From the sequence record NC_041884.1: DNA of 64,000 nt. One strand, 5' to 3'. The notes beneath the pieces are model-generated. The model saw only the letters and a list, made by a program, of their open reading frames with translations, searched no databases and was not told the DNA's origin. Position 1 is the stretch's first letter; every line of letters starts with the position of its first letter. Shown one piece after another: positions 2,231 through 44,988 of this stretch. A program made the position numbers and the translations under genes.

Positions 2231-2483
2231 TTTAGTACCTATCCTAATTACAAGTATAGGACTTCTTTATAGTATTTATCTTTTAATAAGTAGTAAATTT
2301 AATACTAAAGACAAAGCTTGTAATTCGTGTATATGTTTATATGGTATCGGATGGATGTTCTTACTATTACAAACAATTAAAACCCAATTCGAAGGATCTA
2401 TGATAATAGGATTGTTTTTTCTATTAGCTGGATTCTTGATTTGGTCAAGAAAACAATTAAAAACTAAAAGGAGATTAATATGA
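2223..2483 (+). CDS. small 3-TM membrane protein, holin-like
   Basis: Three hydrophobic segments and a basic C-terminus (RKQLKTKRRLI) in the lysis cluster. Confidence 0.55.
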   Translation: MTNLVPILITSIGLLYSIYLLISSKFNTKDKACNSCICLYGIGWMFLLLQTIKTQFEGSMIIGLFFLLAGFLIWSRKQLKTKRRLI

Positions 2484-2860
2484 TTAATCCATTTGGAAGA
2501 ATAGAAACAAAAGGTGCTTTTAGTGGAGCTAAGTTATCAATGGGACTTCACGATACACTTTTACAAACAGGTAGTGTTGGATTAGGAGCTTCAGCTGCTT
2601 GGGGTGCTGGTATTGGTGCTACAGTAGGAGGTATTAACGGAGCTATGTCTTATGATGGTAGTTTCTTAGGAGGAGCTATGCATGGAGCTATGGTAGGATC
2701 TGTTGGTGGTATGGGAGCAAGATTTGCTGCTAATACATATGCTAAAGGTGCTTTTAGTGGAGCTGCTGATTCAGTAGTTAATGGAGTATTCCCTGCACAA
2801 CAAGGTGGTAAATTTAACTGGAGTAATTTCTCCACAGGTTGGTCAGGCCCTTCAGCTTAA
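2480..2860 (+). CDS. glycine-zipper protein
   Basis: Repeated GxxxG motifs (GAGIGATVGGING, GGAMHGAMVGSVGG); AGGAG SD. Confidence 0.7.
   Translation: MINPFGRIETKGAFSGAKLSMGLHDTLLQTGSVGLGASAAWGAGIGATVGGINGAMSYDGSFLGGAMHGAMVGSVGGMGARFAANTYAKGAFSGAADSVVNGVFPAQQGGKFNWSNFSTGWSGPSA
2510..2764 (+). repeat. exact 21-bp direct repeat AAAGGTGCTTTTAGTGGAGCT (KGAFSGA)
   Basis: Copies at 2510-2530 and 2744-2764, flanking the glycine-zipper core. Confidence 0.9.
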
Positions 2861-2870
2861 GGAGAAATAA

Positions 2871-3584
2871 ATGAACATTTCAGAACTACAACAATGGTTG
2901 AATTCACATGGAGCTACACCTAAGCTTAAAGTAGATGGTATAGCAGGCACTTTAACTAGAACTGCTATTATTCAAGTATTTGTTAATAAGGAAGCTTCAG
3001 CTATTACAGAAGATGAATTACTAACAATTGCTAAGCTTTTAGGAGATTCGGATACAAGAAGAATTAAAGCTGTTGCATCAGTTGAGAGTGGGGGTTCTGG
3101 ATGGTTTGATTCAGGCCTCCCTAAAATACTTTATGAGAGACATTATTTCTATAAGTATACTACAGCTGCAATTAAGAAATTAACAGGATGGTTTATAGGA
3201 ACTACTTCTGGGGGCTATACAACTGATATTAATAAAAATGGTATTAATGATAGTTGGGAAAAACTAGCAGAAGCTGCTTGTAAAGATCCTGATGCAGCTT
3301 TTAAATCTGTATCTATTGGTAAGTTTCAAGTGATGGGTGCCTATTATAAAGAATTAGGTTATTCCCACCCTATTGAAATGCTATGGGATGCAAGAAATAG
3401 TGAGTACGCACACTACAGAATGTTAGTTGGGTATATTACTAAAGTAGCTAGAATGACTAGTTCATATAAAAAATTATCAACTAAGCCAGATGATTGTAGA
3501 GAGTTCGCTCTTCGTTACAATGGAAAAGCTTATGAAAAGAATAATTACCACATTAAATTAGCTAACGCTATGAAAAAGTTTTAA
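2871..3584 (+). CDS. endolysin: N-terminal peptidoglycan-binding module plus N-acetylmuramidase (DUF3380 family)
   Basis: ELQQWLN...LKVDGIAGTLTR binding motif; AVASVESGG, ILYERH, SIGKFQVMG, FALRYNG...Y..KL motifs typical of DUF3380 muramidases. Confidence 0.9.
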   Translation: MNISELQQWLNSHGATPKLKVDGIAGTLTRTAIIQVFVNKEASAITEDELLTIAKLLGDSDTRRIKAVASVESGGSGWFDSGLPKILYERHYFYKYTTAAIKKLTGWFIGTTSGGYTTDINKNGINDSWEKLAEAACKDPDAAFKSVSIGKFQVMGAYYKELGYSHPIEMLWDARNSEYAHYRMLVGYITKVARMTSSYKKLSTKPDDCREFALRYNGKAYEKNNYHIKLANAMKKF

Positions 3585-26967: not shown

Positions 26968-27008
26968 AAAAGGAGAACTCTTTAATTGGAGTTCTCCTTT
27001 TTTATTTT
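26968..27008 (+). terminator. intrinsic terminator (possibly bidirectional)
   Basis: Perfect 13-bp stem AAAAGGAGAACTC / GAGTTCTCCTTTT followed by a T-rich tract. Confidence 0.85.
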
Positions 27009-28352: not shown

Positions 28353-28838
28353 ATGGAAGTACGTAAAAAAACAAGATCAAGACAACAAGCAGAAGAAGTG
28401 TACATTCCTCCTCAAGCTACAGAAGAAGAATACCAAGAACCAGTTTTATCAGAAGAAGATAAAAAACTTCAAGAATTATACAATACACTTCAAAAAGCTT
28501 ATGGTGATAATGCACCACTAATTTCTTCCTTAGAAGCTTGGAAGAAAAGGTGGGGTAATATACATATCTCAAAAGTAAGTTCTGAGAGAAATGAATATTA
28601 TATTTGGAGAACATTAAGACGATATGAATATAAAGAACTTAATGTAGGTAATGCTTTAGATGATCCAGAATCTACTAATGAATTATTAGTAGAGAAATGT
28701 CTACTATTTCCTGACTATAATTTTACATTTAGAAATCAAACAGATGCTGGTATCATTACAACATTAGGTCAACAGATTTCCTATAAGTCAGGTTTCGTTA
28801 CTCCTCAAGAAGCACTATCTCTCATTTACATTGCTTAA
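28353..28838 (+). CDS. tail assembly chaperone
   Basis: Synteny; YIWRTLRRYEYK...LVEKCLLFP...AGIITTL.QQI..KSGF pattern. Confidence 0.65.
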   Translation: MEVRKKTRSRQQAEEVYIPPQATEEEYQEPVLSEEDKKLQELYNTLQKAYGDNAPLISSLEAWKKRWGNIHISKVSSERNEYYIWRTLRRYEYKELNVGNALDDPESTNELLVEKCLLFPDYNFTFRNQTDAGIITTLGQQISYKSGFVTPQEALSLIYIA

Positions 28839-28850
28839 CAGGAGATCTAC

Positions 28851-29381
28851 ATGTTTCTCACATCAGGAACATCTTATTACATAATAGCTTTATCAGGCTC
28901 TTACATTCATTGTAAGAGCGGATTAGTTATCCCTTCCCCACAAGTTAAAATCAAACTTCTCACCTATTCAGATCTATACAAAATAAACTTAATGGAACAA
29001 TCAAAAATCTCTTTAGAAGATATATATGAAGAGATTTGTAATAAGTGTGTTTTAGGTATTCAACACTTTGAAGATGAGGAGATAGACTATATTTCATCCC
29101 CTGCGGGAATCGTTGGGCATATAGGTCAGAATATTTTACACCATAGTAAAGATGTATTTTTTGACCTTCCTAAAACATTTGAAGCCTTTTCTAACAGTGT
29201 AACTTTAATAGATCAGATACAGGCTTTCGTATCCAGATATACATGTACTCCTATAAAAGAAGTTAGAGAAATGCCAATAGATCAACTATTGAAAGATTAT
29301 AGTATTATACAAGCATCTTTTCCTCAAGAAATACAACCAATACAAGCAACAGAAGATGAAATAAGTAAAGTAGGTGGATAA
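28851..29381 (+). CDS. second tail assembly chaperone-like protein
   Basis: Precedes the tape-measure-like gene; C-terminal TPIKEVREMPIDQLL resembles chaperone-T motifs; has its own AGGAG SD. Confidence 0.5.
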   Translation: MFLTSGTSYYIIALSGSYIHCKSGLVIPSPQVKIKLLTYSDLYKINLMEQSKISLEDIYEEICNKCVLGIQHFEDEEIDYISSPAGIVGHIGQNILHHSKDVFFDLPKTFEAFSNSVTLIDQIQAFVSRYTCTPIKEVREMPIDQLLKDYSIIQASFPQEIQPIQATEDEISKVGG

Positions 29382-32300
29382 TGGCTAATTACATAACTCC
29401 CTCTAAAGAGATGCTAGAACAAGAGGTAGAAGATAAGAAACTAGAAACTATAATAGATATCTCTAAAGGGAGTGCTGTAGTTGGAGCTGCTTATTATTTT
29501 AATAAGGAATTTGGTAATGCAGAGTCCTCAGTTTCAAAATTCTATCAAAAATTACTAGGAACTGAGTATTTACAACGTCAACTGAATAAGGGTTCTCCTC
29601 TAGCAGACCCTTCAGGAAAATTTGCTAATCAATCTCTAGTTAAATCAATGCTCTCTCAGTTAATGGCTGTAGAAGAAGCTTCCCCTTTACATATATTACG
29701 TACATTACAGCTTAGTAATATTATTAATCCTTATGTCTCCATGACTCAAGCAGACCAAGAAGTAAGATTTTCTAAAAGACAAGTACTATTTCAAAAACAT
29801 TACTTTGAAGCTATGGCTAAGTTTGCTAATAAAGATTTAGATGATAAAGCTATTAAGTCTTTAATGAAACAGGCAGAACATAATGGATTGATATACAAAG
29901 CTGGAAGATTGTATGTAGGTAATAATGATGGAACTATAGGAGACACGTTTGCTAAAGTTGCTAAACTTTCTTTAGCAAATATTAGACAAGGTTCTGTTAA
30001 TTCTCCTAATCAAATGTTTCTTAATTACTCTAAGGCAATTGGTGGTCAGATAGATCTAGATAATTATCATATTAACCCATTAGTGGTTATGGGGGCTGAT
30101 AGTGAAAGTAAGTTTGCAGCTAAATGGGGACAGTCTTGGTTTAAATACGCATTAGAAACAGGTATGAGATCTCTCGATAACCCATTAGCTGGTGTCGAAG
30201 AAATGATGAGTGGCTTAGGAGCTGATAGAACATCCTTGTTTCAATCTAAAGCTTGGTTAATAGCTAAAAGACATCTGAATGTTAACTTAGGTACTAATGG
30301 AGACTATAACTTAGGAATTAGAGAATCATTAGTTAAATCTGGTAAAAACATAGCTGTGAAATCTGCTAAGATTGCAGTAGGTTATGAAGTATTAGACTCA
30401 GTTCTTAGAACTATATCTCCTTCTGATGGATTATTCAGTGAAGGTCTTTTTACTGGTTTAGTTAACACATATGCTAGTATGAGAATAGACTTTGCTAAAG
30501 CTTGGTCAGACCGTTTTCAAGGTTACAAAAAGTCTCAAGAAGAAGCCGCCCCTGGCTCTACTAATATTAGTTCACTACTAGCATTACCTTTATCAGGGGC
30601 AATGTTTGGAGCTCAGATGGGCTATTTTGGAAGGTTAGGAAAGACACTAACATCTAATGCTGATGAAGCTGCTGATATTTATAATGTAGCTAAAGAATCA
30701 AAGCTCTTATCCGCAGTAGGGATTAAAGGTGAGTTTAAACCTATGAAGAGAAATGCTTACATAGGGGCTCTAGCAGGGGCTACACTAGCTCTTCCTTTCT
30801 TACCTGGAGCTTTGATAGGGTCTAGTTCAGAAGAGCTACAAGAGCTTTACAGTGGCGATAAAGAGGTAGCTCAAAAAGCTAACAGATGGTGGGTAATGGG
30901 TGGTAACTCATGGGAAGGAAGTCATACTAAATTCTTTTCTAAACATTTCGTAGCAAGAGTTAACGCTGATGCAACAGATAAGGTTAGATATGGAGATGAT
31001 GAGACTAAGAAGAAACTTAATCCTCTTCTTCATCCTTTTTCTTACCTACAAGATCCATATAAGTTTGAAAAGATGCACGCTGAAGATATGCCATATCCTA
31101 TATGGGGTATGGATGTAGGATATGGTTCCATATTTGGTAAGTTGTTTGAAAGAACTGTTGGTCAGATTATTAAACCAGATGTAGTTAACCCTGCAATATA
31201 TGATTTATCAGAAGCTGCATCTCATTTCACAACTAGAGCTGGAGCTGCTACCTTTATTAAAAATGCGATTTTAGGAAAGATGGGAGAAAAAGATCAAGAT
31301 CAAAGTTCCTTACTTATCCCTACCGCTGTAAATAGAACAGATGCTAGTTTAATAAATGCAGGATTACTTAGTCATCCTGAAGCTGCTAGATATAATCCTA
31401 ATGTAGAAGGAGCAGGGTTAGTTTATCAAGCATTAACAGACTTAGTAGGTATTAAAGGATGGGCGGCTTCATTTCCATTAGCCTCCATAGGAATAGACCC
31501 TTCAAACGTACCTCTACAACTAGCTAGATCTGGGGAAGCAACTTCAGCAGCTAGAGATTTAGTATCTCAGAACCTAGGCGATATGGCAGGGATGGGTGAA
31601 TTCCAACGTAAGATTTTAGGAACTTCATCTGGGTCTATTATAGATAGATCAAACCCTCTAACTAATAATCTTCCTTCTTGGTTACCTTCAACTGACTCTC
31701 AATACTATATAAACTTTAGAAAAGGTAATGCCTATGATAAGGTGCCTTTAGGTGAAGAAAGAATTGCAGGAGAAGGTTTTGGAGCTTTAAATAAAGAAGT
31801 TGAAGGTGTTGATCCAGAAGACTACAGTTTAGTTTATAAGTATAAAGTACTAGCTGACGTTGCTAAAGGGTCTAGAGAGCATATTAGAACTCGCCAGAAT
31901 ATTCTCCAAGCATACAATGCAGGAAAACTTTCAGATAGAGAAACAGAGATTCTAGAACAAACTTTACAGCAAGAACAAGAAAGAGACCAAAAGAAAACTT
32001 TCTATGAACCATCTTCAGTTGGGAAACGTTTTGGATTCGGCCCTATAGGTTATGTACAAAGTTCTATATGGGATTTTGTATCTAAGCATAGCGAATCTCC
32101 TCTAGAAATGTTAACTCCAATTAGACCTTCTGCTAAGTTTCTACATAATAGAACTGCTATACAAGATTATGTAGAAACTCAACTAGGAGGTACTGATGCT
32201 GCTGTATGGACTAACTATTATTCTCACTTCATTAAACCTGCTTTAAATAAAACCAGATTAACATTTGATGGCGGATTTAGACCTGAAGAAAAGCTTGAGA

Positions 32301-33172
32301 AAGATACAATTAATGAATACTTTGATAAGATGAAACACATCAAGAATAGATCAGATGTTAATCCTTATAATGATTCTAATTCAGTTGTAGCTACGTCCAT
32401 GTCTGGGTTGAATACAGTAGATAAAGTAATGAAGTTTAAAAAATCATTATCAGATGATGAACGTGATTACTTCGAGTCTTTTTCTAAAGAAACATCAGAG
32501 AAAAAGAGGGATATGATTAGATCATTATTACCTTCAGATGTGTTACGAGGATATGAACAGATATGGCGAAATGTTGATATAGCTAAGGATGCTAAAGAGA
32601 GAGGTATAAGTGTACAAAAAGCTATTGCTGATGACATACATAATAATACTAATAAACTTAAATCAGCTATGGATGTATCCCTATCAGATAAAGAAAGACA
32701 AATAGCTAGAGATAAAGTTAAGTCTAACTCAGATAGCTATTGGAATATGGGTTTTAGTGAATCAGAGAGAATTCAATACACTGAAGATGAGTTGTTAAGA
32801 CTTAAGATGGCAGACATGGAATCATTAACATATCTTAATAACTCTACTGGAGTTCCATCTAAGAAATTCATGGGTTGGGATCCTAGATTAAAGACTGATG
32901 ACATCAAGATAAGAACATTATCTGTAGGTGGAGAAGATCTTAAGAGATTTGGATTCTGGCAGAAAGATGAAGAGAGGATGAATCGATTAGAATTCTTAAA
33001 ACAAGATAACGAAGTAGTACAATCGTTAGATGAAATTAAACATGAGCTTAAGAAGAATAGATATATGAAGCAACAGATAAGTGACTTAATGTTTAAACAT
33101 GGTTTTAAAACTAACAATATAGATGTAGTTGACTCTAGTTATGGAGATTTAATAATTGAAGGACAAAGATAA
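29381..33172 (+). CDS. tape-measure-like or ejected protein (1263 aa) with Gly-rich hydrophobic segments
   Basis: Canonical tape-measure position after the chaperones; helical; hydrophobic stretches LLALPLSGAMFGAQMG and IGALAGATLALPFLPGALIG. Confidence 0.55.
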   Translation: MANYITPSKEMLEQEVEDKKLETIIDISKGSAVVGAAYYFNKEFGNAESSVSKFYQKLLGTEYLQRQLNKGSPLADPSGKFANQSLVKSMLSQLMAVEEASPLHILRTLQLSNIINPYVSMTQADQEVRFSKRQVLFQKHYFEAMAKFANKDLDDKAIKSLMKQAEHNGLIYKAGRLYVGNNDGTIGDTFAKVAKLSLANIRQGSVNSPNQMFLNYSKAIGGQIDLDNYHINPLVVMGADSESKFAAKWGQSWFKYALETGMRSLDNPLAGVEEMMSGLGADRTSLFQSKAWLIAKRHLNVNLGTNGDYNLGIRESLVKSGKNIAVKSAKIAVGYEVLDSVLRTISPSDGLFSEGLFTGLVNTYASMRIDFAKAWSDRFQGYKKSQEEAAPGSTNISSLLALPLSGAMFGAQMGYFGRLGKTLTSNADEAADIYNVAKESKLLSAVGIKGEFKPMKRNAYIGALAGATLALPFLPGALIGSSSEELQELYSGDKEVAQKANRWWVMGGNSWEGSHTKFFSKHFVARVNADATDKVRYGDDETKKKLNPLLHPFSYLQDPYKFEKMHAEDMPYPIWGMDVGYGSIFGKLFERTVGQIIKPDVVNPAIYDLSEAASHFTTRAGAATFIKNAILGKMGEKDQDQSSLLIPTAVNRTDASLINAGLLSHPEAARYNPNVEGAGLVYQALTDLVGIKGWAASFPLASIGIDPSNVPLQLARSGEATSAARDLVSQNLGDMAGMGEFQRKILGTSSGSIIDRSNPLTNNLPSWLPSTDSQYYINFRKGNAYDKVPLGEERIAGEGFGALNKEVEGVDPEDYSLVYKYKVLADVAKGSREHIRTRQNILQAYNAGKLSDRETEILEQTLQQEQERDQKKTFYEPSSVGKRFGFGPIGYVQSSIWDFVSKHSESPLEMLTPIRPSAKFLHNRTAIQDYVETQLGGTDAAVWTNYYSHFIKPALNKTRLTFDGGFRPEEKLEKDTINEYFDKMKHIKNRSDVNPYNDSNSVVATSMSGLNTVDKVMKFKKSLSDDERDYFESFSKETSEKKRDMIRSLLPSDVLRGYEQIWRNVDIAKDAKERGISVQKAIADDIHNNTNKLKSAMDVSLSDKERQIARDKVKSNSDSYWNMGFSESERIQYTEDELLRLKMADMESLTYLNNSTGVPSKKFMGWDPRLKTDDIKIRTLSVGGEDLKRFGFWQKDEERMNRLEFLKQDNEVVQSLDEIKHELKKNRYMKQQISDLMFKHGFKTNNIDVVDSSYGDLIIEGQR

Positions 33173-36100
33173 TGGATAAACGATTAGCAGCTGTTGCCGC
33201 TGGAGCTTTAGGAGCTGCATACACTACAGACATATTTGAAAATCCTATAACTGGTGTTGTAAATGCTGGTATTGGAGCTGCAATGGGTAGTATGCTTATT
33301 CTACCCGAAGTAGATGTTCGTAACTTAGCCAAAGTAGTTACAGGAGTTAAGCAAGATGAGGCTTCAATATTAGATAGAGCTTCTAGTGGAATATCTAAAC
33401 AAGAGGAAAAATTAAGAACAAACTTCTCGACTAGAGTAGAAAGCTTCATAGATAGTTTTATGAAATATTCTGAAGGTGATGGATTAGAGAATGGTTTTAA
33501 AGAAAATCTAGATACTGTTATAAAAAATTCTAAAAGTATTGAGACCATATTAAAGTCTAGAGGGTATAACAATATTCCTAGTCTTCCTGAAGATCCAGCT
33601 AAGTTTAGTGAATTCTTAAAAGGACTAACAAATAAGCATGATATCTCAAGTATAATTCCTCTTTTCTCTGAAGATGCAATCGATTTTGTTAACACTAATG
33701 CTGTAAATGCTCCTAAAGTTTCTCAATACACTACTAGAATTGATGGGTCATTATCTCAAGAAGATAAGATTAAAAAACTGGCATCAGTCTTTGAAACTCA
33801 GTTTGGAAATAAAGTTGAAGATGCTATGGACAAAGCATCAATGTTTGTTAAACGAGCTGTAGGAGATATTAAGATATCTGATGGTAGTATTATTCTTAAT
33901 GATGTTGTTGACTCCAAATCTGTAACTGTACCTATTACATCTTATGATGCAAATGGAATTAGATATCATAATGCTGGAAATGGTAGAGCAATGGCTGTAA
34001 AAGGATTCTCTCCATTTGCATCTTTATATATGAATGAAGGTGTATCTTCTTATGCTTATGATTTTGCAGACGGAAGAAGACTAGTTACATTGGAAGATGT
34101 TGAAAGAGGATTAGATCCTGAAATGATGTTAAAGTTTCTTCCTGAAAAATCTCCTATGGCTGACTATGTAGGTAATATGAAAAAATTAATTTCATATGAC
34201 GCCTCAGAAGCTGCACATGAGATAATCGATGGACCTAACTTTACTGTAACATCTCCTCAACTTAAGAACTTATCTACTATTACTTCTTTAGAGTACCAAT
34301 TGAATATTGATTCACAAGGTAATATCAATCACAATAGACCTCTTGTAACTCCTTCAAGTTATCTACAGAAAGAGGGAGGAGGAAGTGCTGTAGCTGATAT
34401 AGTGATTAATAAACTCTCTATTGATAATAAAAGAGCTCATAAATATGGTATTGGTACATCAGGAAATAAGTCATTGGATATCCAGACCAATCCTAATAAA
34501 GGTACTATAGGTATGTTTGTTCCTAAAACTCGTAATCCTAGTGGATCTGTACTTAGAGATACAGCCCCTGTTAAGAGGGGTCAAGGGATGCAAGCTTTAG
34601 ATATGATATATGGAAATTTTATTAAAGATAATTATGCATCAGCTCAAGTTGTTAATAAACTAGATATTAATAATGCCAAAGCCTTTAATGAATTTGCAGT
34701 TGCTTTAACAGGGCAAAATCAAACTATTCTTGCTGATGGTTTTGGTTTGTTTAATAAAGGACATTCAGAAGCATTCAGTATTAAGACTACAGCTGAATTA
34801 GCTATTCCTCTTGACAATAGAACCTTAATGCTTAATAAGGACCTGAAAGAAGCTTTAGAATCTCCAAATTTAAATGATTTTTTAAGAGAGAAGGGTGGGA
34901 TTAACATTGGAACAGATATTCTTGGGTACGATGCTAATGGAAGACCGTTCCAATTAGGTAAACAATTCTCAGAAGGAATTATAAAATCAGGTAGACGAGA
35001 TAATAATGGAAGACTTTTACTATCTATAGATGCTAGATTTAATCCTCAATCGGAAGAGAGTTTGAAATTCTTTTCTGTAGGGTCTAAATCATTAGCAGAG
35101 GGAATAGAACAAACAAGATTTAATATTCTTGCATCTGTAGGTTCGTTAATGAATGAAGGTTTAGTATCATTTCAAAACAATGTACTAACAGCTAATGATA
35201 CTGCTCCTGAAGCTCTTAAACTTGCACTAGGGAACGGACTAGGATTAGACGATATTAAAAGACTAGATCAAAATAGGCATTTCTCTGTATTTATGAGACA
35301 AGATGTCTCTATGATTACAGAAGCTTCTAAGACTGGTATGAGTGACTTACAACATCTTTTAAATGCATCTCCAGATGATGAACTCTTTCAAGAATTTGCT
35401 AAAGCTCACAATATCACTAAATTATTAATGGATAATCCAGCACAGAAGAGATCTATTGTTACAGCTGCTTTCTTAATGCAAGAAAATAAAGCTAATGAAG
35501 ATATAACTTCTGCTATCGCTACTAGACTTATGAAGCCTTTACAAGATTTAAAAAATCAAGTTTCAGGCTCTAAAGACTACAGATCTATTGTTAACTTAAT
35601 GAATGCTGGTATTATACCTAAGACTAAAAACTTTACTCCTGAATTGATTGATCAAGCTATAAATAATGTAGCATCTGCATGGCGATCCGCTACTAGTATT
35701 AATAAATACTATAAAGGTGATAGATTAGCTCAAATGGAAGATTTAACTAGACTTGTTGCTCTTTCTGGAATTGATTCAGATTTAAGAGGAGGTGTTTCTA
35801 GTACTATTGGTACAGTTAATAAAGGTAGAGCGAATGTAGGTACTGGAAATAAAGCAAGTATGTCATGGGTAGCTAGAACAAGTTTACTAGGTTCTGGATA
35901 TTCAAGAAAGCAATTAGATCTTTTTGGAAAGATAGATGACGGATTACTGTATGAGGTTAACTCCCTACAAAGAGAGACAGCCTTTCAAACTAAATCTGTG
36001 AATTCGTTTATAACAGGAAGAGAAAAAGAACTTAGTTCAATACTAATGAATACAACTCCTGAACAAAGGATTAGTAGACTTAGAAGTGCTTTTGCATACG

Positions 36101-37983
36101 ATAGTAAAAATCCTTATATTAGTTATAATTTTAATTACACTGATCATGATATTAAATCTCTTAATTTCTCTCTCATTTCAACAACAAGAAGTGGTAAGTT
36201 TGATTTTAAAGACAGAGAGTTAATTAAAGAATTAGAGTCTAAACGCTTAGATTTACTTAATTTAGATATTGCTTGGGGAAGAGCTTCAGGTAAAGAAAAA
36301 ACTAGATTAGGAAAAGAACTCAAAGCTGCTCTAGATAGTTATACTACTTACAGAACAAATATGTTGTCTGGTGATAACAGTTTAATGAAAGGAGCTTTAA
36401 AACTTTACAATGAGTCTTCAGGAATCTATGAAGTTAAACCTGTAGGAGGAGCTGCTGAACGTCTTTTTGCTAAATCAGAATTGAATGCAGATGGTTCTTA
36501 TAAAGGAATTTCAGACAAGGTTGTTATGTCAAAAGGAGGAGTAAGGGAGTGGGCTTCAAGATTAGGTATTAAGGCAAAAGATATAGAGTTATTAGATACA
36601 GAAGAATTAGGTAAAGGTGAGCAGTCTCTTAAGAGAGTTATGTATAGAGATGCTGATAATAGATTAGTTCCTCTCTCATTAATGGCTTCTCGTGAACCAG
36701 CACAAGGTACAATGTCTTCTCAATTATTAGATGTAGTTCTTGATTCAACTATAGATCATAATGACACTGCTTTATTCTTCTCTAGAGGAAGTGCTGCTTG
36801 GTCTATTATGATGGGTGGAGACCACGATCAAGACCAAGCAGCTGTATTAGGAAATAAGCACTCTTACTCTGAGTATAGAGACTTGAAAAACACAGCAGAT
36901 ACCATTAGAGAACGTAATGCAACTCATCTTAATGACTCGTTACTGATGTCACCTAAAGGAAGTACTAAATCAGCAGTTACATTAAATAACTTTGGAAGTT
37001 TAGCAGAGTACAGTGAATATAATAACAAATCAGCTATGCAAGGAACTATTCGTAAAGATATTTCTCCTATGGCTACAGAGTTTAAGATCAATGTTAGTGA
37101 AGCTGTTAAGAAACGTTTCTATGGGGATGCAGACTTAATTACTGAAGCTGAAAATGCTTTATATAGATCTGTAGAAGGTCTATTAAAAACAAGTCACATC
37201 AGCACTGAAGACTTTACAGGTACTATGGCAATACAACAACTAGATTTTGCAAGAAGACAATATGTAGAAGGGGTATATGACAGTGATAAGTACGAGAAAG
37301 TTTTAAGAGAACATATACCATCTATCCTAGGATATGACGAGAATAAACCTAATGCAGAAAGACTTTCTAATATAGTTGATAACTTAGTTAGTGCTGAAAT
37401 AGATCAAGCTAAACGAGTTCATAGGGAAGCCTTCACTCCTACTCAAATCAATAAGGGTGAAAGGTCTGCTGCTCAGACTACAGCTAATATAGGGTCAATA
37501 TTAAAAGCTCAAGATATTGTAGATGTAGAAGAAGGAATAGATATGGCTCGTTCTCCACAGCAGTTGTATCATGGTGCTACTGATGCTATTATGGATACGT
37601 TTAAACGTAACAAGAGTTTAATTGCTGTTGGATTATCAGCAATGGCTGGAGTTTCATTATTAGCTAGAGAACAACCATCATTTAGTGACTCCAGAGATAA
37701 TGTAAGGATGCATAATACTCAAATGTTACAACAAAGAATAGACCCTGAAACAGTAGAAACAGGAATAGAAACAAATGTTAATAGAACTAACTACATTCAG
37801 CCTCAATACAATTCTAATAAAGCTGTTAGAATGTCTGGAGACTTTGTAGAACAAAGTTATAACACTTATGAACAATTCCCTTCTGACTTAATGGATTCAG
37901 CTGACACTCAAGTACAATCATTACAAAATGCTGTATTTGGAAATGATATGAGAAACGCAAGATTAAATATTACAGACTTATAA
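33172..37983 (+). CDS. putative single-chain two-barrel (double-psi beta-barrel) RNA polymerase, probably virion-packaged
   Basis: Beta-like ILAD522G and LK632FFSVGSK639SL, then beta'-like SR1174EP and GGD1217HD1219QD1221QAAV, matching bacterial NRAP...NADFDGDQMAV in order and spacing. Confidence 0.8.
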   Translation: MDKRLAAVAAGALGAAYTTDIFENPITGVVNAGIGAAMGSMLILPEVDVRNLAKVVTGVKQDEASILDRASSGISKQEEKLRTNFSTRVESFIDSFMKYSEGDGLENGFKENLDTVIKNSKSIETILKSRGYNNIPSLPEDPAKFSEFLKGLTNKHDISSIIPLFSEDAIDFVNTNAVNAPKVSQYTTRIDGSLSQEDKIKKLASVFETQFGNKVEDAMDKASMFVKRAVGDIKISDGSIILNDVVDSKSVTVPITSYDANGIRYHNAGNGRAMAVKGFSPFASLYMNEGVSSYAYDFADGRRLVTLEDVERGLDPEMMLKFLPEKSPMADYVGNMKKLISYDASEAAHEIIDGPNFTVTSPQLKNLSTITSLEYQLNIDSQGNINHNRPLVTPSSYLQKEGGGSAVADIVINKLSIDNKRAHKYGIGTSGNKSLDIQTNPNKGTIGMFVPKTRNPSGSVLRDTAPVKRGQGMQALDMIYGNFIKDNYASAQVVNKLDINNAKAFNEFAVALTGQNQTILADGFGLFNKGHSEAFSIKTTAELAIPLDNRTLMLNKDLKEALESPNLNDFLREKGGINIGTDILGYDANGRPFQLGKQFSEGIIKSGRRDNNGRLLLSIDARFNPQSEESLKFFSVGSKSLAEGIEQTRFNILASVGSLMNEGLVSFQNNVLTANDTAPEALKLALGNGLGLDDIKRLDQNRHFSVFMRQDVSMITEASKTGMSDLQHLLNASPDDELFQEFAKAHNITKLLMDNPAQKRSIVTAAFLMQENKANEDITSAIATRLMKPLQDLKNQVSGSKDYRSIVNLMNAGIIPKTKNFTPELIDQAINNVASAWRSATSINKYYKGDRLAQMEDLTRLVALSGIDSDLRGGVSSTIGTVNKGRANVGTGNKASMSWVARTSLLGSGYSRKQLDLFGKIDDGLLYEVNSLQRETAFQTKSVNSFITGREKELSSILMNTTPEQRISRLRSAFAYDSKNPYISYNFNYTDHDIKSLNFSLISTTRSGKFDFKDRELIKELESKRLDLLNLDIAWGRASGKEKTRLGKELKAALDSYTTYRTNMLSGDNSLMKGALKLYNESSGIYEVKPVGGAAERLFAKSELNADGSYKGISDKVVMSKGGVREWASRLGIKAKDIELLDTEELGKGEQSLKRVMYRDADNRLVPLSLMASREPAQGTMSSQLLDVVLDSTIDHNDTALFFSRGSAAWSIMMGGDHDQDQAAVLGNKHSYSEYRDLKNTADTIRERNATHLNDSLLMSPKGSTKSAVTLNNFGSLAEYSEYNNKSAMQGTIRKDISPMATEFKINVSEAVKKRFYGDADLITEAENALYRSVEGLLKTSHISTEDFTGTMAIQQLDFARRQYVEGVYDSDKYEKVLREHIPSILGYDENKPNAERLSNIVDNLVSAEIDQAKRVHREAFTPTQINKGERSAAQTTANIGSILKAQDIVDVEEGIDMARSPQQLYHGATDAIMDTFKRNKSLIAVGLSAMAGVSLLAREQPSFSDSRDNVRMHNTQMLQQRIDPETVETGIETNVNRTNYIQPQYNSNKAVRMSGDFVEQSYNTYEQFPSDLMDSADTQVQSLQNAVFGNDMRNARLNITDL

Positions 37984-37998: not shown

Positions 37999-40900
37999 AT
38001 GGATACACCAGTACAGTTAGATACTTTATATTTTACTGCTGCTGAAGAAAAAGAGATGTTTGTTATTAACGATATTGAGGTGGGTGTAAGCCCATCCGAT
38101 ATCATGATGTTTGATAACAACTATGTACATGAGCAGACATTTGTTAGATCAAACTCTGTCTTTTGTTACAGATCAAAATACTCTGAAACTAAAGTAACAC
38201 TAAACTTTCCCTTTCAAATAACCCCTCAAAATTTAGTAGCCTCTGGTGAAGACTTAGAAAATAATACGTATAACTGTATTAGATTAATAACTGAGTTAAA
38301 CAGCTATCCTTTCTGTTTTATTAAAAGTCCTCGATTAAAAACTTACGTATCTCCTGCTATGACATCTACAACAGACTACCTAATGTTTGCTGTAGAGGAA
38401 CTTGCTGTTGTTCAGTCAGCGGCAGCTTCTAACTTATTATTGCTTGAAGTTACTTTAGTGTATTTTAACCATGCGCCATTAGCAGCAGATTTTCAATTTG
38501 TTTCTAATAAAGTCGTAACTAAGTCAGGTACATTTAGTACAACAGAAGGTACTGTTAAGACAGAGAGAGACTACATATCTTTTGAAACTCCTAAAGTTGT
38601 TTCTAATTTAGTATCTTCTGATATTTGGGCTCAGTATATTAATCCTAAAGTAGATAAAGTTACTGAGAAATTAGAGAATAATGGTTTATATGAAAAGATG
38701 ATGAACTCTAAAACCACACATGCTGGTTTAGATGTTAATGTCTTCATTCCAATGATTTCTACAGGTATTGAACATGCTGCTAAGTATATGGCAGATGATG
38801 ATGGGAAGTTATTAGCTCCAGACGCTAAAGTAGTTGTAACTACTGATATGGCTCCAATGGAAGATCTAGATCTTCCTAGAAGTATTCGAGAAACCTTAGA
38901 TCAAAACTTTGACGAGTCTAGATTTGAAACTGATTCAATCAAAGGCATGGTAGGTAGAAAGAAAGTAAAAGATAGTAAAGACACTGATAGTACAGATATC
39001 TCTTCTACTAATGAAGTTTCTAATAAAGAAGAAGCTGTTAATAATGTAGGTAAGGATGGAAGCACTCCAAGAGGATACAAACAAGTTTATGTTCAATACA
39101 GTAAAGCTTCTTTTGCTCAACTTGGTTTAGCAGTACAAAAGATAGAAGTACGAAGAAAGAACATATTAGCTATACAAAAAATTGGTGCTTATAAACATCC
39201 TATCGTTCAATTTATGGGTAAGAGAGCTGCACAGACTACCATACAATTCTTAAATAACTCTGATGGAGTTTATAGCGAGTATGATGAAGATAGTGGTATA
39301 GCTTCTTTTCTTACTAATGCTTTTCAGATTCTAGATGAAAATAGAAGACTATATCCTGAAGCAGAGGCTTATAATACATTAAAGATTCATTCATTAGCTT
39401 CTTTTCTCTTAAACTCAGAATCATCAATTCCTAATATTAATAACTTAGTAGCATCAGCAGATAGAAATGGTATTGAAACAATGATCTATCACTTTGCTGA
39501 AACTAATGTAGAAGGATTATTTGATAGTAATAGATTAGAGGCTTCTGGAGCTAAATCTATTTCTAAAGCAAGATCAGAAGTATATGGAATAATTCTCACA
39601 TGGTTAAAAGAATTTAATAGATTACTTTCTAAAAGTAATAAAGAAGGCATTTATCATTTTGCTAATATGAATCAAGACCAAGAAGTTGTCGCTACCTCTT
39701 TAGATATATATGAAGATATTGTAAGAGTTACATTAGCAGGAATGAGAGATTTAGGATTAGATAAGCTCAAAGGAGATGCTGCTGTAATCAAAACAGTAAC
39801 AGATCAATTATCTGATGGAGAGATTTCTCTAGGGAGTGCTAATAAGTTTAGGAAATATTCTTTTGTTTCGTCTAAATCTAGAGTGTTAAGTTCTGGCTTA
39901 AACTTATATGTAGATGCTTCTGAGTCACCTGTAGACTACTTTGATCCTTCTTATTCAGTTAGAGAGATGAGCATTAGTAATTATCATAACTGGTTCTCTG
40001 GTTATGCTATTCAAATCCTTCAAGCTAAGTTAGATCAAATGGATGGGAAACCTATTAATTTAACAAATATTCAAATCAGTGATACACCATCTTCACAATT
40101 TGAAACCTTAGCTACAACTATTATCAATAAATTAGGAAGAACACCTGAAACTATTCCTTTTGGAAATTCTTTCTCAGATAGTCAAAAATTCTTTATTAAG
40201 AATATGATTGACACTTACATAGGTTCTATGTATGGACAGAATCTAAGCGATTTAAAGTTAGAAGACATAGAAGAAGACTATGATGTAACTAAAGATGTTG
40301 TTATTCAAAGTACAGACCCTTTCTTTTTCTTATATACTGAACCTCTTATTGCTGATGAAATGAAAGCATTCTTTAATGATAGTTATAATGAAGAACAATT
40401 AAATAATAAAGCTTTAGAAATAAACGAAGATGCCGAGACAGTAAAACAGATGTCTTCTATAGAAGTTATGCTTGGTGCTAACTACAGAAAGCTTGAAGAG
40501 GTTGATTTTAATGAGAGTGATTGGGCAAGTAATCCAGCTGAAACAGGCGTTGTAACTGTATGGGGAGGAAGTGTAAATCTTAAGCCTTCGAAGAATGTAT
40601 CTGAAGCTATTGAGTATGCTTTATCTGTTTATGGAATGTCTGGAGATGAAGAACTAAGACAGTATATGTATAAAACTGCTTATATTGAGTCTAGACTCGG
40701 TACTAATATGGGATCAGGTCAAACTTATAGAGGTTTGTATCAATTCAGCAGAGGTGCTTTAGATAGTGTTCTAAGAGCAAATAATAAAGCGTACGCTTCA
40801 AAAGGGTATAAAAATTTAAGACCAGCAGATGCTGCAAAAATTGCAGATAAGATATGGAGTGATTCAAGTTTTATTAGAGACTTTAAATCAAGTGCTGTCG

Positions 40901-43900
40901 CATTTTTAGATAGTATGTTTTTAGTTCATGGTGGAAAAAAGACTAATCCTAGAACTGGTAAATTTGACATGCCTTATACGTATGCTGGACATCAACAAGG
41001 TGGTGGAGGTCAAATTAATGTAGGGATTTATCTAAAAACTGGAGTTAGTCCTGCTGTAGGAAAGTCAGCTGAAAATTTAAGACAGAATTCATCATCTACA
41101 TGGGCTAACTGGTACGCAGTTCATTCTAAAAAATATAATGAGTTGGCTCCATATGCAGGAGCTCCAGGAGTAGATCAAGCTAAGAAAGATGCTAAAAAAC
41201 AAGATGCACTAACTAAGCAAACTGTTAGTCAGCCTTCACCTTCCTTTACATCTGCAAGTGCTAGAAATGGTACTTTAAAAACAGGTCAAACAGTAGTCGG
41301 ATATGTTGTAAGAGAAGTAGATGGTGATACATTAGATGTTCAGTATACTGTTGATGGTAAGTCTATTATTCAACGTATTCGTGTTGCTGGGTTAGATACT
41401 CCAGAGACAGATAAGAATAACTCTAAATATAATCCTAAGACTGAGAAGTATGGTCAACAAGCTAAAGCAGAACTTGCAAAACTTAGAGGAAAACAAGTAA
41501 GTATTTCTGTACTAGGGGTTGAGAATGATAATTCTGAATATTCTGTAACACCTAGTACAAAAGTTCGTCTAGTCGCTAGTGTAACTACTGTCGATAAGAC
41601 TAATGTAGGATTAGATATGATTAAGAAAGGATTAGCTAATGTTAATACTATCTTCTCTACTAACCAACAATATACTGCTGCTCTTGAAGCAGCTCAACGT
41701 AGTAAGAAAGGTATGTGGGCTGAATTACCTGCAAATAAAACAGGAGCTCCAACTCAACAACCAATCAGAAAACCAGTAACTCCAGAGTTTACAGGAGAGA
41801 CAGGGAATAATTTTCAACCATTTGCTAATGGTCAGAAGTTTCCTATTAGTTCTCCATTTACTTATGGTAAGCCTAGACAAGATATTAAACGTTCTTCACC
41901 TCACAATGGATTAGATTTAGCAGCTACTAAAGGTACGACTGTAATTGCAGCAGCTTCTGGTACAGCAACATTTAGAGTAGCGAGTGGTTATGGATATTTA
42001 GTTGAGATTGATCATCATAATGGTTTTAAAACTAGATATGCTCATTTATCTAAATCCTTTATTGGTAAAAAACCACAAAAAGTAAATGCTCACCAACCTA
42101 TTGGATTATCTGGTGGTGTTAAGGGAGATATAGGTGCAGGAAGTTCTACAAATGCTCATCTACACTATGAAGTTCATTATAAAGGACGACCAATACATCC
42201 TTTCACTACTAAACAAACATTAGATAAATATGCTGAAGGTTCTTTAGTAGAAGGAGAATTCTCAACATATCCTCAAACAGTAGAAAATAGTGGAATATAT
42301 ACCCCTCCATCTTACAATCCTCGAACAGGTATTACTCCTGAAAATACCGTATACAATGAACAGTACCTAGCAGAAGCTATTATTGATAATGCTAAGAAGT
42401 ACATTAATACAGGTATGAAAGTAGCTCTTCCAGCTATTAAAGTGTATATTGTAATAGGTAATGAGAATGACGGGTTAGGATTAAGTTCTTCGCTGACTGG
42501 TGTTCAATACTACGAACTAAATGGTGTTCAAGCTTTTAAGATGGTTTGCAATAATGATAATAATCCTATTGATGTTGCTATCATGCAAGTTATTAATCCA
42601 TCATTTATGCATACAGATGCTTGGACTAATCAAGCTCCTCCAGGTGTAGATTTAACTAAAGTAGGTACAGATTTAGAAACACAGCTATTGAAGAGTAGAA
42701 TGTTATTAAAAGTTGGTACTAAGCTTCAAGTCAGACTAGGTTATGGTAATGACCCTAATGAATTAGATATTGTATTTAATGGAGGTATTGTTGAAGTTGG
42801 TAACAATGAAAATAATCAAATCATGACTTTAGTTTTAGAAAGTTATGGTAGGGAGTTATTACAAGAGATTGTTAATCCAACTGCACCTGAAGAATCTCCA
42901 CAAGTTTCTACAACCAGTATTATTGGTAAAGCATTACAGTCTAGATCAATAGATCACTTTGGTGCTACTAACAATTTAATTAAATGGTTCTTTAAAGAAG
43001 GCGGAGAAGATCCTGAACAAAGATCTTTAGTGCCAGCAATAGATATTACAGGAAGAGCAGGATTCTTTAACTTGTTTTCAGCTTCTACGTATAGTTCTAG
43101 ACTTTACATGAATATCTTTGCACCAGAGATTGAAAATGTTGATAACACCTATAGTAGTTTATTAAGTTCTTTAATTGATGGTCTAGGTTGGTCTAATAAA
43201 CAAATGTTCCCTACATTCTTTATCTATCAAGCAACTGCTTGGGATATATGTAAACAAATGGAATACAGACACCCTGGCACAATATTTAAACCTATGATAT
43301 TTGAAGATAGAGTAACACCTTTCTATGGTATCAAAGAGCAGATGTATTTTGCTAGAGATTTATCTACTTATACACAGATGCAAGTAAAGGCTAAACTAGA
43401 AGATGAGGTTAGAGACAAACAAGTGCGAGATTACTACTCTAGACGTAGAGAACGTATGAAGCCTGTTAGTAATATTCATATGATTTCCTCTTCTACTAAT
43501 TTAATGTCTAATGGTATTAAATTAAATTCACAATGGAAAACTTCTGTAAACGTTTCTTGGTTTGAAGACAGTGATGACTTTAATGAATATTGGGAATGGC
43601 AAACTCAGAAGATGGATGTTGATGACAACTTACTTCCTTGGGAGATCAGAGAAAAAGAATTAAGAATGAGTGGTATTCATGGTAAATACTCTTCTTTCAT
43701 GTATGGCACAGAGGCTTTGAAAAAAGAAGCTGAAACTATGTACGGAGGAAGTATATTGATAACAGGTAATCCATCTGTTAAAGCAGGAGACTATATTTTT
43801 ATAGATGATACTGAAAACAGAATGTCTGGATTATGTTTAGTTAGAGACTGTATTCACCACTTTGATCCTCAGTTTGGCTTTGTCACTGAGATTACTCCAG

Positions 43901-44988
43901 GATTGTATGTAGAGCCTGCTGCTTTCATGTATAGTGCATTATGGATTAAACTTATGTGTACATTTAAGGTAGGTAGTAGTAAAATAAGACTTAATACATC
44001 ATCTGGCTATTCGTCTCAATATAATCTAATTAAGGACTATTTAGATTTGATGCAACAGTTAGTAGCAGCTGGAGATAATCCTTCCCTGTCTAACTACGAT
44101 ATAGAAGACTCTAGATTACTTATGTTAACGTACTCAACAGCTATTACTCTTTCAGCTTATATGGGTTGGAGTTTGTCTAGATTTTTAGGGCAAGGAGCTA
44201 CACCTATATTTAATAAGAAAGGTCTAGTTAGATTTAGTGCTGCCACGATGAGAGGATTGTTTCATACAGGAACTAATAGAGTCTTCAATTCAGCCTTAGC
44301 TAAAGTAAAGAAAATAGATAGAGTTGCTAAAACACTATCTTATGCTAATGGAAAGTATACAACTACCAAATCTACTGTAATTGCTTCAAAAGCCTTTCAA
44401 AGATTTGCAACATCTAAACCAGTAACCGCTTTAAATGGAATTAGAAACAGATGGTACTATAGATGGACTGCTGGCCTCACTAAAGGAACTGCTAGTCTAC
44501 TATTTAAAGGTGTTACTAGAGCTTCTATGGCAACCATACATGGTTTTGCTGCTAGTAATCCAGTGACACTGATACTTGATGTTGCTTTAACCTTAATTGC
44601 TTCTTGGGCTTTTGCTAAAATAGAAGAAAATAAATTGACAAGACAACCTTTACTATTCTTCCCTTTAATAGCTCATGGAAAACCATACGTTGCTGGTATG
44701 ATGGGTGCAGTTAGAAATAGTTGGCTTGATAGTAAAAAACTTGAAATTGGAAAAACATGGAATCAAGTTTCTAAAGCTGCTGCTGCAATAGATGCTAATA
44801 ACGGTGTGAAAGGTGAAAATACAAATCCTGTTGTTAAGTTAATAGCTAAGCAGTCACACGCTACAGCTGAAGTAAAGAATGTTAGTATGGTTAAGAAGCC
44901 AGTAACTCAAACAGTAACTATTGACCAAGTACAGAAACAATTTGATCCAGATGAAGGAACAGTTAAAAGTCCATTCAGACCTAAATAA
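37999..44988 (+). CDS. multidomain baseplate hub or tail lysin (tube-like, lysozyme/SLT-like, SNase thermonuclease, M23 peptidase and hub domains)
   Basis: IES...GLYQF...HQQG (about 40600-41060); DGDT...RVAGLDTPE...EKYG (about 41290-41725); HNGLD...HLS...HLHYEV (about 41830-42205); hub-like KVGTKLQVRLGY...VFNGGI and GNPSVKAGD motifs. Confidence 0.85.
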   Translation: MDTPVQLDTLYFTAAEEKEMFVINDIEVGVSPSDIMMFDNNYVHEQTFVRSNSVFCYRSKYSETKVTLNFPFQITPQNLVASGEDLENNTYNCIRLITELNSYPFCFIKSPRLKTYVSPAMTSTTDYLMFAVEELAVVQSAAASNLLLLEVTLVYFNHAPLAADFQFVSNKVVTKSGTFSTTEGTVKTERDYISFETPKVVSNLVSSDIWAQYINPKVDKVTEKLENNGLYEKMMNSKTTHAGLDVNVFIPMISTGIEHAAKYMADDDGKLLAPDAKVVVTTDMAPMEDLDLPRSIRETLDQNFDESRFETDSIKGMVGRKKVKDSKDTDSTDISSTNEVSNKEEAVNNVGKDGSTPRGYKQVYVQYSKASFAQLGLAVQKIEVRRKNILAIQKIGAYKHPIVQFMGKRAAQTTIQFLNNSDGVYSEYDEDSGIASFLTNAFQILDENRRLYPEAEAYNTLKIHSLASFLLNSESSIPNINNLVASADRNGIETMIYHFAETNVEGLFDSNRLEASGAKSISKARSEVYGIILTWLKEFNRLLSKSNKEGIYHFANMNQDQEVVATSLDIYEDIVRVTLAGMRDLGLDKLKGDAAVIKTVTDQLSDGEISLGSANKFRKYSFVSSKSRVLSSGLNLYVDASESPVDYFDPSYSVREMSISNYHNWFSGYAIQILQAKLDQMDGKPINLTNIQISDTPSSQFETLATTIINKLGRTPETIPFGNSFSDSQKFFIKNMIDTYIGSMYGQNLSDLKLEDIEEDYDVTKDVVIQSTDPFFFLYTEPLIADEMKAFFNDSYNEEQLNNKALEINEDAETVKQMSSIEVMLGANYRKLEEVDFNESDWASNPAETGVVTVWGGSVNLKPSKNVSEAIEYALSVYGMSGDEELRQYMYKTAYIESRLGTNMGSGQTYRGLYQFSRGALDSVLRANNKAYASKGYKNLRPADAAKIADKIWSDSSFIRDFKSSAVAFLDSMFLVHGGKKTNPRTGKFDMPYTYAGHQQGGGGQINVGIYLKTGVSPAVGKSAENLRQNSSSTWANWYAVHSKKYNELAPYAGAPGVDQAKKDAKKQDALTKQTVSQPSPSFTSASARNGTLKTGQTVVGYVVREVDGDTLDVQYTVDGKSIIQRIRVAGLDTPETDKNNSKYNPKTEKYGQQAKAELAKLRGKQVSISVLGVENDNSEYSVTPSTKVRLVASVTTVDKTNVGLDMIKKGLANVNTIFSTNQQYTAALEAAQRSKKGMWAELPANKTGAPTQQPIRKPVTPEFTGETGNNFQPFANGQKFPISSPFTYGKPRQDIKRSSPHNGLDLAATKGTTVIAAASGTATFRVASGYGYLVEIDHHNGFKTRYAHLSKSFIGKKPQKVNAHQPIGLSGGVKGDIGAGSSTNAHLHYEVHYKGRPIHPFTTKQTLDKYAEGSLVEGEFSTYPQTVENSGIYTPPSYNPRTGITPENTVYNEQYLAEAIIDNAKKYINTGMKVALPAIKVYIVIGNENDGLGLSSSLTGVQYYELNGVQAFKMVCNNDNNPIDVAIMQVINPSFMHTDAWTNQAPPGVDLTKVGTDLETQLLKSRMLLKVGTKLQVRLGYGNDPNELDIVFNGGIVEVGNNENNQIMTLVLESYGRELLQEIVNPTAPEESPQVSTTSIIGKALQSRSIDHFGATNNLIKWFFKEGGEDPEQRSLVPAIDITGRAGFFNLFSASTYSSRLYMNIFAPEIENVDNTYSSLLSSLIDGLGWSNKQMFPTFFIYQATAWDICKQMEYRHPGTIFKPMIFEDRVTPFYGIKEQMYFARDLSTYTQMQVKAKLEDEVRDKQVRDYYSRRRERMKPVSNIHMISSSTNLMSNGIKLNSQWKTSVNVSWFEDSDDFNEYWEWQTQKMDVDDNLLPWEIREKELRMSGIHGKYSSFMYGTEALKKEAETMYGGSILITGNPSVKAGDYIFIDDTENRMSGLCLVRDCIHHFDPQFGFVTEITPGLYVEPAAFMYSALWIKLMCTFKVGSSKIRLNTSSGYSSQYNLIKDYLDLMQQLVAAGDNPSLSNYDIEDSRLLMLTYSTAITLSAYMGWSLSRFLGQGATPIFNKKGLVRFSAATMRGLFHTGTNRVFNSALAKVKKIDRVAKTLSYANGKYTTTKSTVIASKAFQRFATSKPVTALNGIRNRWYYRWTAGLTKGTASLLFKGVTRASMATIHGFAASNPVTLILDVALTLIASWAFAKIEENKLTRQPLLFFPLIAHGKPYVAGMMGAVRNSWLDSKKLEIGKTWNQVSKAAAAIDANNGVKGENTNPVVKLIAKQSHATAEVKNVSMVKKPVTQTVTIDQVQKQFDPDEGTVKSPFRPK

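Follow-up and report, generated by a model that had tools for sequence, protein, structure and literature searches.

The window analysed here comprises bases 1-64000 of Acinetobacter phage vB_AbaM_ME3 (KU935715.1), a stretch of 64,000 nucleotides in which window and record coordinates coincide. ME3 is a jumbo myophage of the genus Metrivirus with a genome of 234,900 bp. Its structural module, the sole plus-strand block of the genome, runs through sheath, tube, the chaperone-like ME3_33 and ME3_34, ME3_35, ME3_36 and the hub ME3_37. ME3_36 (AND75197.1) is deposited in KU935715.1 as a 'hypothetical protein', and its open reading frame (ORF) is identical to that of the record. A sequence-only reading of the locus had proposed that the gene encodes an RNA polymerase (RNAP) with two double-psi beta-barrels (DPBBs) in a single chain, perhaps packaged in the virion. 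The identity of ME3_36 as an RNAP is well supported by the analyses reported here, and the virion probably carries the enzyme for the start of phage transcription. The gene and the elements placed along it are given below; barrel boundaries were taken from the secondary-structure strings of the structural models, to which the model numbers refer.

33172..37983, plus strand: ME3_36, 1603 aa, ATG start, single-chain two-barrel RNA polymerase candidate
33184..33306, plus strand: hydrophobic N-terminal segment rich in Gly/Ala, residues about 5-45 (hydropathy highest, 1.69, at residues 26-44)
33307..34431, plus strand: N-terminal region, residues 46-420, conserved among close relatives
34432..36351, plus strand: beta-like half, residues 421-1060, from the AlphaFold2 model and Foldseek matches in the PDB
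34735..34740, plus strand: D522-G523, invariant acidic position in a small alpha/beta domain before the first barrel, present in 54 of the 54 relatives aligned at that site
34900..35193, plus strand: strand cluster taken as DPBB-B, residues about 577-674 (model strands 157-254)
35065-35067 and 35086-35088, plus strand: K632 and K639, respectively (K212 and K219 in model numbering)
36517..36849, plus strand: strand cluster taken as DPBB-A, residues about 1116-1226 (model strands 696-806)
36691-36699, plus strand: R1174-E-P1176, within the putative DPBB-A
36820-36834, plus strand: D1217-x-D1219-x-D1221, in the loop between model strands 780-784 and 802-806
37000..37116, plus strand: bridge-helix candidate, a 39-residue helix at residues about 1277-1315 with R1294-K1295 (model helix 857-895)
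37129..37227, plus strand: trigger-loop candidate, helix and loop at residues about 1320-1352 with E1335/K1339/H1342 (model helix 900-918)
37612..37980, plus strand: residues 1481-1603, the C-terminal tail, hydrophobic at 1483-1498 and conserved at its very end

All seven motif stretches quoted in the sequence-only reading lie at the residues and bases that it gave. Among them are GQNQTILADG (residues 514-523, with D522 as a putative counterpart of the acidic pair in the cellular beta subunit), LKFFSVGSKSL (631-641, with K632 and K639), GRANVG... (885-909), MLSGDN... (1064-1084), SREPAQG... (1173-1190, with R1174) and GGDHDQDQAAV (1215-1225, with D1217-D1221 at nucleotides 36820-36834). ME3_36 also satisfies [RK]xPx{20,100}DxDxD, a signature used for the survey in the published work on Thermus phage P23-45, with R1174-E-P1176 standing 40 residues ahead of D1217. 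Judged from the sequence of this one protein, such motifs are within chance expectation: a protein of the size and Asp content of ME3_36 is expected to contain about 0.5 DxDxD, and 7 of the 273 ME3 ORFs of 100 aa or more carry the longer signature. The observation rises above chance because the residues are invariant across a deep family and because the predicted fold matches RNAPs.

The family was assembled at two depths. A word-indexed search returned eight relatives with 36-98% identity, in which D522, K632, K639, R1174-EPAQG and D1217/D1219/Q1220/D1221 are all invariant. When a profile of residues 421-1480 was scored against 1.84 billion representative proteins, 83 proteins were retrieved at E<=1e-3, 57 of them at E<=1e-30. 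Most relatives are 1,400-2,400 aa long, the region before the core varying from about 400 to 1,600 residues in distant ones; the best-conserved part corresponds to ME3 residues about 875-1480, and identity drops to 16-20%. All members were aligned to the profile and residues were counted per column. The positions that the earlier reading had proposed to check for invariance in homologues are invariant without exception, D1217, D1219 and D1221 being found in 83 of 83 aligned relatives, K632 and K639 in 75 of 75, and R1174, like P1176, in 82 of 82. K1262 is nearly invariant, and conservation extends beyond the triad to R1294 (81/84), K1295 (83/84), E1335 and K1339 (both 84/84) and H1342 (79/84).

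The same alignment corrects one expectation. The DHDQD loop had been described as a non-canonical active site, but the residue after the first Asp of the loop is F in 35 of the 83 members, Y in 25, H in only 8 and M in 6. Going by these aligned sequences, the ME3 loop is a minor lineage variant of a D[FY]DxD loop, and not a new active site, because its second position is mostly F or Y in the family. The type agrees with loops in published descriptions, DFDGD in P23-45 gp96 and DFDxD in crAss-like phages.

The glycine-rich hydrophobic ends described by the sequence-only reading held for one end of the protein better than for the other. On a Kyte-Doolittle mean over a 19-residue window with a cut-off of 1.5, the N-terminal segment stands out (mean 1.69), whereas the C-terminal stretch 1483-1498 is weaker and stays under the cut-off. 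Between R4 and P45 the nine closest sequences share 13 invariant positions, and in close relatives the C-terminal tail has invariant positions up to D1602. We considered the terminal motifs as a hallmark of the whole family and rejected this: when strict patterns were written as regular expressions, about a third of the 79 full-length relatives kept them, which makes them a feature of a subclade.

The fold was addressed with AlphaFold2. The core model (residues 421-1480, 44-sequence alignment) has a mean predicted local distance difference test score (pLDDT) of 88.6 and a predicted template modelling score (pTM) of 0.87, with residues 1452-1480 falling below a pLDDT of 50. A Foldseek search of the PDB with this model gave 29 matches at E<=1e-3, the best being 6bzo_D (E 1.1e-4, probability 0.99). 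Largest subunits of RNAPs (bacterial, archaeal, plastid or eukaryotic) or the single-chain enzyme QDE-1, whose chains appear at E about 1e-3, make up 48 of the top 50; the remaining two are efflux pumps with probabilities of 0.11-0.14. Residues 421-1060 were modelled separately to test the first barrel alone (pLDDT 88.4, pTM 0.72). With this model, every one of the top 50 PDB matches is a chain B, that is, a second-largest subunit of the beta/Rpb2 type, among them poxvirus 7aoh_B, archaeal 4qiw_B and chain B of Pol II and Pol III (best E 5e-3, probability 0.98). The structural comparison that the earlier reading had called for thus leads from the C-terminal half to the largest subunits of RNAPs and from the N-terminal half to the second-largest subunits only. 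What these models offer as evidence is the uniformity of the two lists, each single E-value being modest. In BFVD, which holds predicted viral structures, the best match other than ME3_36 itself comes from an uncultured siphovirus and is named 'minor tail protein' (E 1.4e-9), followed by an unnamed protein (1.5e-9) and, from an uncultured podovirus, an 'RNA dependent RNA polymerase' (5e-7); RNAP subunits of giant viruses and poxviruses come further down.

The two putative barrels can be placed on the models. The triad-bearing barrel, DPBB-A, contains the invariant DxDxD, and its fold matches include beta', A' and QDE-1. For the second barrel, two basic residues are the feature given in PMC7824862; in the models, K632 and K639 lie in or beside consecutive strands, and their invariance together with the exclusively second-largest-subunit matches points to this region as DPBB-B. 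The putative DPBB-A is followed by the 39-residue helix with R1294 and K1295 and by the helix and loop with E1335, K1339 and H1342, which we regard as candidates for bridge-helix-like and trigger-loop-like elements. The order beta-like then beta'-like in a single chain, as first proposed from the sequence, is borne out by residue invariance in the 83 relatives and by confident AlphaFold2 models. We predict, with high confidence, that ME3_36 is a single-chain relative of both large RNAP subunits.

The surroundings of ME3_36 place it among structural genes. The neighbouring features, all in the window, are the following.

28353..29381, plus strand: ME3_33 and ME3_34, tail-assembly-chaperone-like pair by record annotation, with the same sizes and order in relatives
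29381..33172, plus strand: ME3_35, 1263 aa, candidate tape-measure-like virion protein, after the chaperone-like pair and directly upstream of ME3_36
33170..33174, plus strand: TAATG, in which the ME3_35 stop shares one base with the ME3_36 start
37999..44988, plus strand: ME3_37, 2329 aa, baseplate hub / tail-tip protein, directly downstream of ME3_36

The translational coupling to the tape-measure-like gene, as noted in the sequence-only reading, is real, and an identical one-base overlap of stop and start recurs in a relative (L004). The location in a tail module was likewise confirmed, ME3_36 lying between ME3_35 and the hub gene in an arrangement that distant relatives conserve. The order of chaperone pair, a protein of ~1,270-1,350 aa, RNAP-like gene and hub with SNase and M23 domains is kept in a relative at 36% identity and in two relatives at about 20% identity (their contigs measure 191 and 230 kb), and the most distant relative examined has a similar one. 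The plus-strand block, the overlap with ME3_35 and the conserved order all show the gene to be encoded with structural genes. A strong hairpin resembling an intrinsic terminator (26968-27001, plus strand; stem of 14 bp, then a T run) directly follows the tube-like ME3_30, and no further strong terminator was found from ME3_31 to ME3_38. ME3_35 is annotated as a 'virion structural protein' homologous to gp145 of Bacillus phage 0305phi8-36, a virion protein by mass spectrometry; it has one hydrophobic segment (residues 461-479) and no Pfam or PHROG match. ME3_37 contains an SNase domain (PF00565, 4.7e-14, residues 1126-1241) and a Peptidase_M23 domain (PF01551, 4.5e-22, residues 1301-1401). Both domains recur in the gene downstream of ME3_36 relatives, with an additional SLT domain in one.

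Several observations on this region stand on their own. A nuclease domain at a tail tip, here staphylococcal nuclease (SNase) beside Peptidase_M23 in ME3_37, is unusual. A 40-kb Acinetobacter phage record, PBAB25 (MG366115.1), matches ME3_37 residues 754-1226 (window 40258-41676) in five pieces with 84% protein identity, which suggests mosaicism or a mixed assembly. A GTG-started antisense ORF of 186 aa (33135-33695, minus strand) overlaps the start of ME3_36; it is absent from the record annotation and is probably spurious. The window has a G+C content of 32.4% and the genome 30.76% according to a comparative paper, so that the 40% given in the genome announcement appears to be wrong.

A second candidate polymerase emerged from the BFVD search with the ME3_36 model, which returned another ME3 protein of 798 aa with a probability of 0.99. 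By its length this is ME3_309. The gene belongs to a group of small minus-strand genes close to the genome's right end and is not part of the window.

KU935715.1 222114-226849, minus strand, outside the window: second RNAP-like gene, made up of ME3_309 and ME3_307

Most relatives of ME3_309 consist of one ORF about 1,140-1,190 aa in length; R785/P787 and D843/D845/D847 (DxDGD) are invariant, and the family has at least 44 clusters. ME3_309 and ME3_307 were compared separately, not joined: ME3_309 corresponds to the N-terminal part and ME3_307 to the triad-bearing C-terminal part, sharing 45% identity with a relative over the latter's residues 812-1140 (E 5e-85). Between them lies ME3_308, with a T5orf172 domain and a treble-clef zinc finger, which looks like a homing-endonuclease-type insert that interrupted the gene once; a search with Rfam found no intron around the interrupted gene. 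Profile-profile comparison revealed no similarity between the ME3_36 and ME3_309 families. An uninterrupted relative of the second gene and a relative of ME3_36 were found in the same samples, both with a longest contig of 201,195 bp, and scans of IMG/VR for co-occurrence of the two families yielded few loci only. The right-end gene probably encodes a non-virion polymerase. Its presence strengthens the sequence-only reading of ME3_36 and suggests, by analogy with P23-45, a pair of one virion and one non-virion polymerase.

One further ME3 gene may be mentioned beside this pair. ME3_243 (KU935715.1 187426-187638, outside the window, 70 aa) is annotated as 'baculo_LEF5_C superfamily', and only PHROG families with unknown function match it. 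The annotated name hints at a TFIIS-like zinc ribbon, and a protein of this kind would fit a phage with beta/beta'-type polymerases of its own.

How does ME3_36 compare with known phage polymerases? The closest parallel in organisation is P23-45, which has a virion RNAP fused to the tape measure, gp96, and a non-virion RNAP, gp64. Like ME3_36, gp96 has two barrels and a DxDxD triad, is tied to the tail tape measure and lacks sequence similarity to other RNAPs. Both phages have a second, non-virion two-barrel RNAP elsewhere in the genome (putative in ME3), and both have a metallopeptidase and membrane segments in the neighbourhood of the tail tip. In gp96, however, polymerase, membrane segments and metallopeptidase are fused, whereas in ME3 they are spread over three adjacent genes. 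The gp96 polymerase forms the tape measure's N-terminal domain; ME3_36 is a separate ORF after the tape-measure-like gene. We rejected the idea that it could be a gp96-type fusion, as it has its own start and stop and the ORFs are separate in relatives too. P23-45 is a siphophage, ME3 a jumbo myophage with a contractile tail. The ME3_36 model has about 400 mostly helical residues between the barrels, while gp96 is described as flat and clamp-less; and the two P23-45 enzymes cluster together, unlike the two ME3 families, which profile-profile comparison could not connect. Neither gp96 nor gp64 is among the top 50 fold matches of ME3_36, and there is no sequence match to them.

With gp66 of phi14:2, a crAss-like phage, ME3_36 shares a large single-chain two-barrel architecture, a motif of the DFDxD type and invisibility to ordinary sequence searches; published work describes gp66 as virion-associated. 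The two differ in that gp66 comes from podovirus-like crAss phages, in which it lies in a gene-expression module, and ME3_36 lies in a tail module. In structure gp66 is closest to QDE-1, whereas the halves of ME3_36 match beta/beta'-type subunits ahead of QDE-1, and the gp66 structure is not in the top 50 fold matches. ME3_36 thus would resemble the virion RNAPs of P23-45 and crAss-like phages in the way it works and is a member of neither family, because it has no sequence link to them, does not have them among its top fold matches, is unfused and is more like beta/beta' than like QDE-1.

The cellular beta/beta' subunits (Rpb2/Rpb1, archaeal B/A') give the best fold matches, in the same order and with the lysine pair and the Asp triad. 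Yet the ME3_36 core has about 1,060 residues in one chain, compared with about 2,700 in the two bacterial subunits, at about 10% identity; it has no evident alpha, omega or sigma partners, and it carries extra N- and C-terminal regions with hydrophobic segments. Jumbo phages of the phiKZ/AR9 type have a beta/beta'-related polymerase in the virion and a second, non-virion enzyme, as proposed for ME3, but their enzymes have four or five subunits and are recognisable by sequence, in contrast to the single chain of ME3_36. With the virion RNAP of N4, a giant polymerase that is injected along with the DNA and serves early transcription, the analogy is functional only. The N4 enzyme has a T7-like fold rather than a two-barrel one. 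It has been named together with those of T7 and SP6 as a single-subunit phage RNAP.

These comparisons lead to a proposal for how ME3_36 would work. Residues about 421-1060 would form the beta-type part, supplying K632 and K639, and residues about 1061-1450 the beta'-type part, with the RxP element, the metal-binding Asp triad and the bridge-helix-like and trigger-loop-like helices. The protein would be made late, together with the tail proteins, as we infer from the same-strand block, the coupling to the tape-measure-like gene and the absence of an internal terminator. It would become a virion component, located most likely in or at the tail beside the tape-measure-like protein and the hub, and be delivered with the DNA. 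In the cell it would transcribe the first phage genes independently of the host enzyme, presumably including the right-end RNAP-like gene, whose product would take over afterwards. Fold, residue invariance and gene order were computed, packaging and injection inferred. Overall, we favour the view that ME3_36 is a catalytically competent two-barrel DNA-dependent RNAP that is packaged in the virion, injected and active in early transcription before the second RNAP, and we consider it a likely one.

A number of results weigh against this proposal. Searches of Pfam, PHROGs and PDB sequences with ME3_36 as a single protein gave no relevant match, Pfam searches with four long relatives gave none, and no RNAP came up when profiles of 9 and 44 sequences were run against PDB sequences, so that at the level of sequence these methods appear to link the family to no RNAP. 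Foldseek returned modest E-values, 1e-4 with the whole core and 5e-3 with the N-terminal half, and low template modelling (TM) scores of about 0.15-0.25; such values are to be expected when multi-domain proteins differ in the arrangement of their domains, as we assume here. Among the cultured phages of the collection searched, only ME3 carries a gene of this type. The passage of a folded core of ~120 kDa through a tail tube is not obvious. Position also has to be read with care. The structural genes of 0305phi8-36 are distantly related to those of ME3, and the slot of ME3_36 is taken there by gp146, a virion protein of 2,537 aa with the annotation of a hypothetical tape measure. We rejected gp146 as a homologue: it has no DxDxD and no hidden Markov model (HMM) or BLAST similarity to ME3_36 or ME3_35. 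The neighbouring gp145 and gp147 do not match the ME3_36 family HMM either. Position alone implies no polymerase, because gp146 occupies the same slot and is not an RNAP; the slot holds virion proteins in both phages, and the polymerase is specific to the ME3 lineage.

Elsewhere in 0305phi8-36, ORF102 (1836-3488, minus strand, of locus L015; 550 aa; in the terminal repeat) has a motif of the DxDxD type. It may be the 'YonO-like' protein ABS83659.1 that PMC7824862 cites for this phage, a mapping that we guessed from the numbering.

Which other readings would account for these data? The one we take most seriously, although we consider it unlikely, is that ME3_36 is a two-barrel RNAP that stays unpackaged and has a late role inside the cell, for example on late genes, its place among tail genes reflecting co-expression. 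This would sit well with our literature searches, which found no virion proteome of ME3 or any relative and hence no proteomic evidence of packaging, and with the lack of a phage-specific promoter motif in a crude survey of genome-wide 11-mers and of 8-10-mers in 55 minus-strand intergenic regions compared with shuffles, two negative results that also count against the packaged enzyme. But a polymerase made only with the tail proteins would come too late to be useful unless it were carried to the next cell, the position between the tape-measure-like and hub genes is kept down to about 20% identity, and the second RNAP-like gene, among minus-strand non-structural genes, suits an intracellular role better. 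The hydrophobic N-terminal segment, the conserved termini and the tape-measure annotation of the 0305phi8-36 counterpart would agree with a structural tail or ejection protein, a second tape-measure-like or a channel-forming one, derived from a polymerase and no longer polymerising. We give this little credence: the catalytic positions are invariant in every aligned relative of a family that reaches down to 16-20% identity, so loss of activity is not expected, and the modelled core is a globular alpha/beta multi-domain structure rather than an extended helical ruler. A role as the tape measure itself was rejected on the same globular model of residues 421-1480 and because it is ME3_35, not ME3_36, that directly follows the chaperone-like pair.

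A similarly low probability attaches to a two-barrel polymerase of another specificity, whether RNA-templated like QDE-1, primase-like, or DNA-synthesising in the manner of archaeal PolD. Sequence does not reveal template or product, QDE-1 is among the fold matches and one BFVD match is named an RNA-dependent RNA polymerase; the best matches of both halves are nevertheless subunits of DNA-dependent multisubunit RNAPs, and a PolD chain appears in neither top 50. That the resemblance is fortuitous and ME3_36 no polymerase strikes us as very improbable. The frequency of DxDxD and RxP...DxDxD among ME3 ORFs and the lack of sequence-level matches would be in keeping with chance, but two independent models gave uniform match lists, with a different RNAP subunit for each half, and the residues of the motifs do not vary. 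The packaged, early-acting RNAP is the reading that we retain.

Full-text literature searches by phage, accession and genus returned no earlier description of the ME3_36 family. A 2021 census of jumbo phages reports such enzymes only in other groups and does not list ME3, and the accessible supplementary files of the P23-45 survey of viruses with two RNAPs have no entry for Acinetobacter or ME3. Both ME3 enzymes were thus missed by surveys of jumbo phages and of two-RNAP viruses, which implies that sequence searches underestimate how widespread phage-encoded transcription machinery is. Few systems with single-chain two-barrel virion polymerases are known (crAss-like gp66, P23-45 gp96), only one of them tied to the tail.

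Two families of 'hypothetical proteins', with 83 and at least 44 clusters, hereby gain a testable function. As a more tentative and rather speculative extension, ME3-like jumbo myophages might run a host-independent cascade of two polymerases drawn from two previously unrecognised single-chain beta-beta' families, with ME3_36 passing through the contractile tail together with the tape-measure-like protein and transcribing the DNA during its entry. In that case ME3_36 would be a second, independently organised tail-associated polymerase, so far an arrangement seen only in the siphophage P23-45. For phage therapy against Acinetobacter, it is worth knowing that such a phage may be able to do without the host polymerase in early infection, and ME3, being in culture on a standard collection strain, would be an accessible system in which to study how a polymerase is stored in, and exits from, a virion with a contractile tail.

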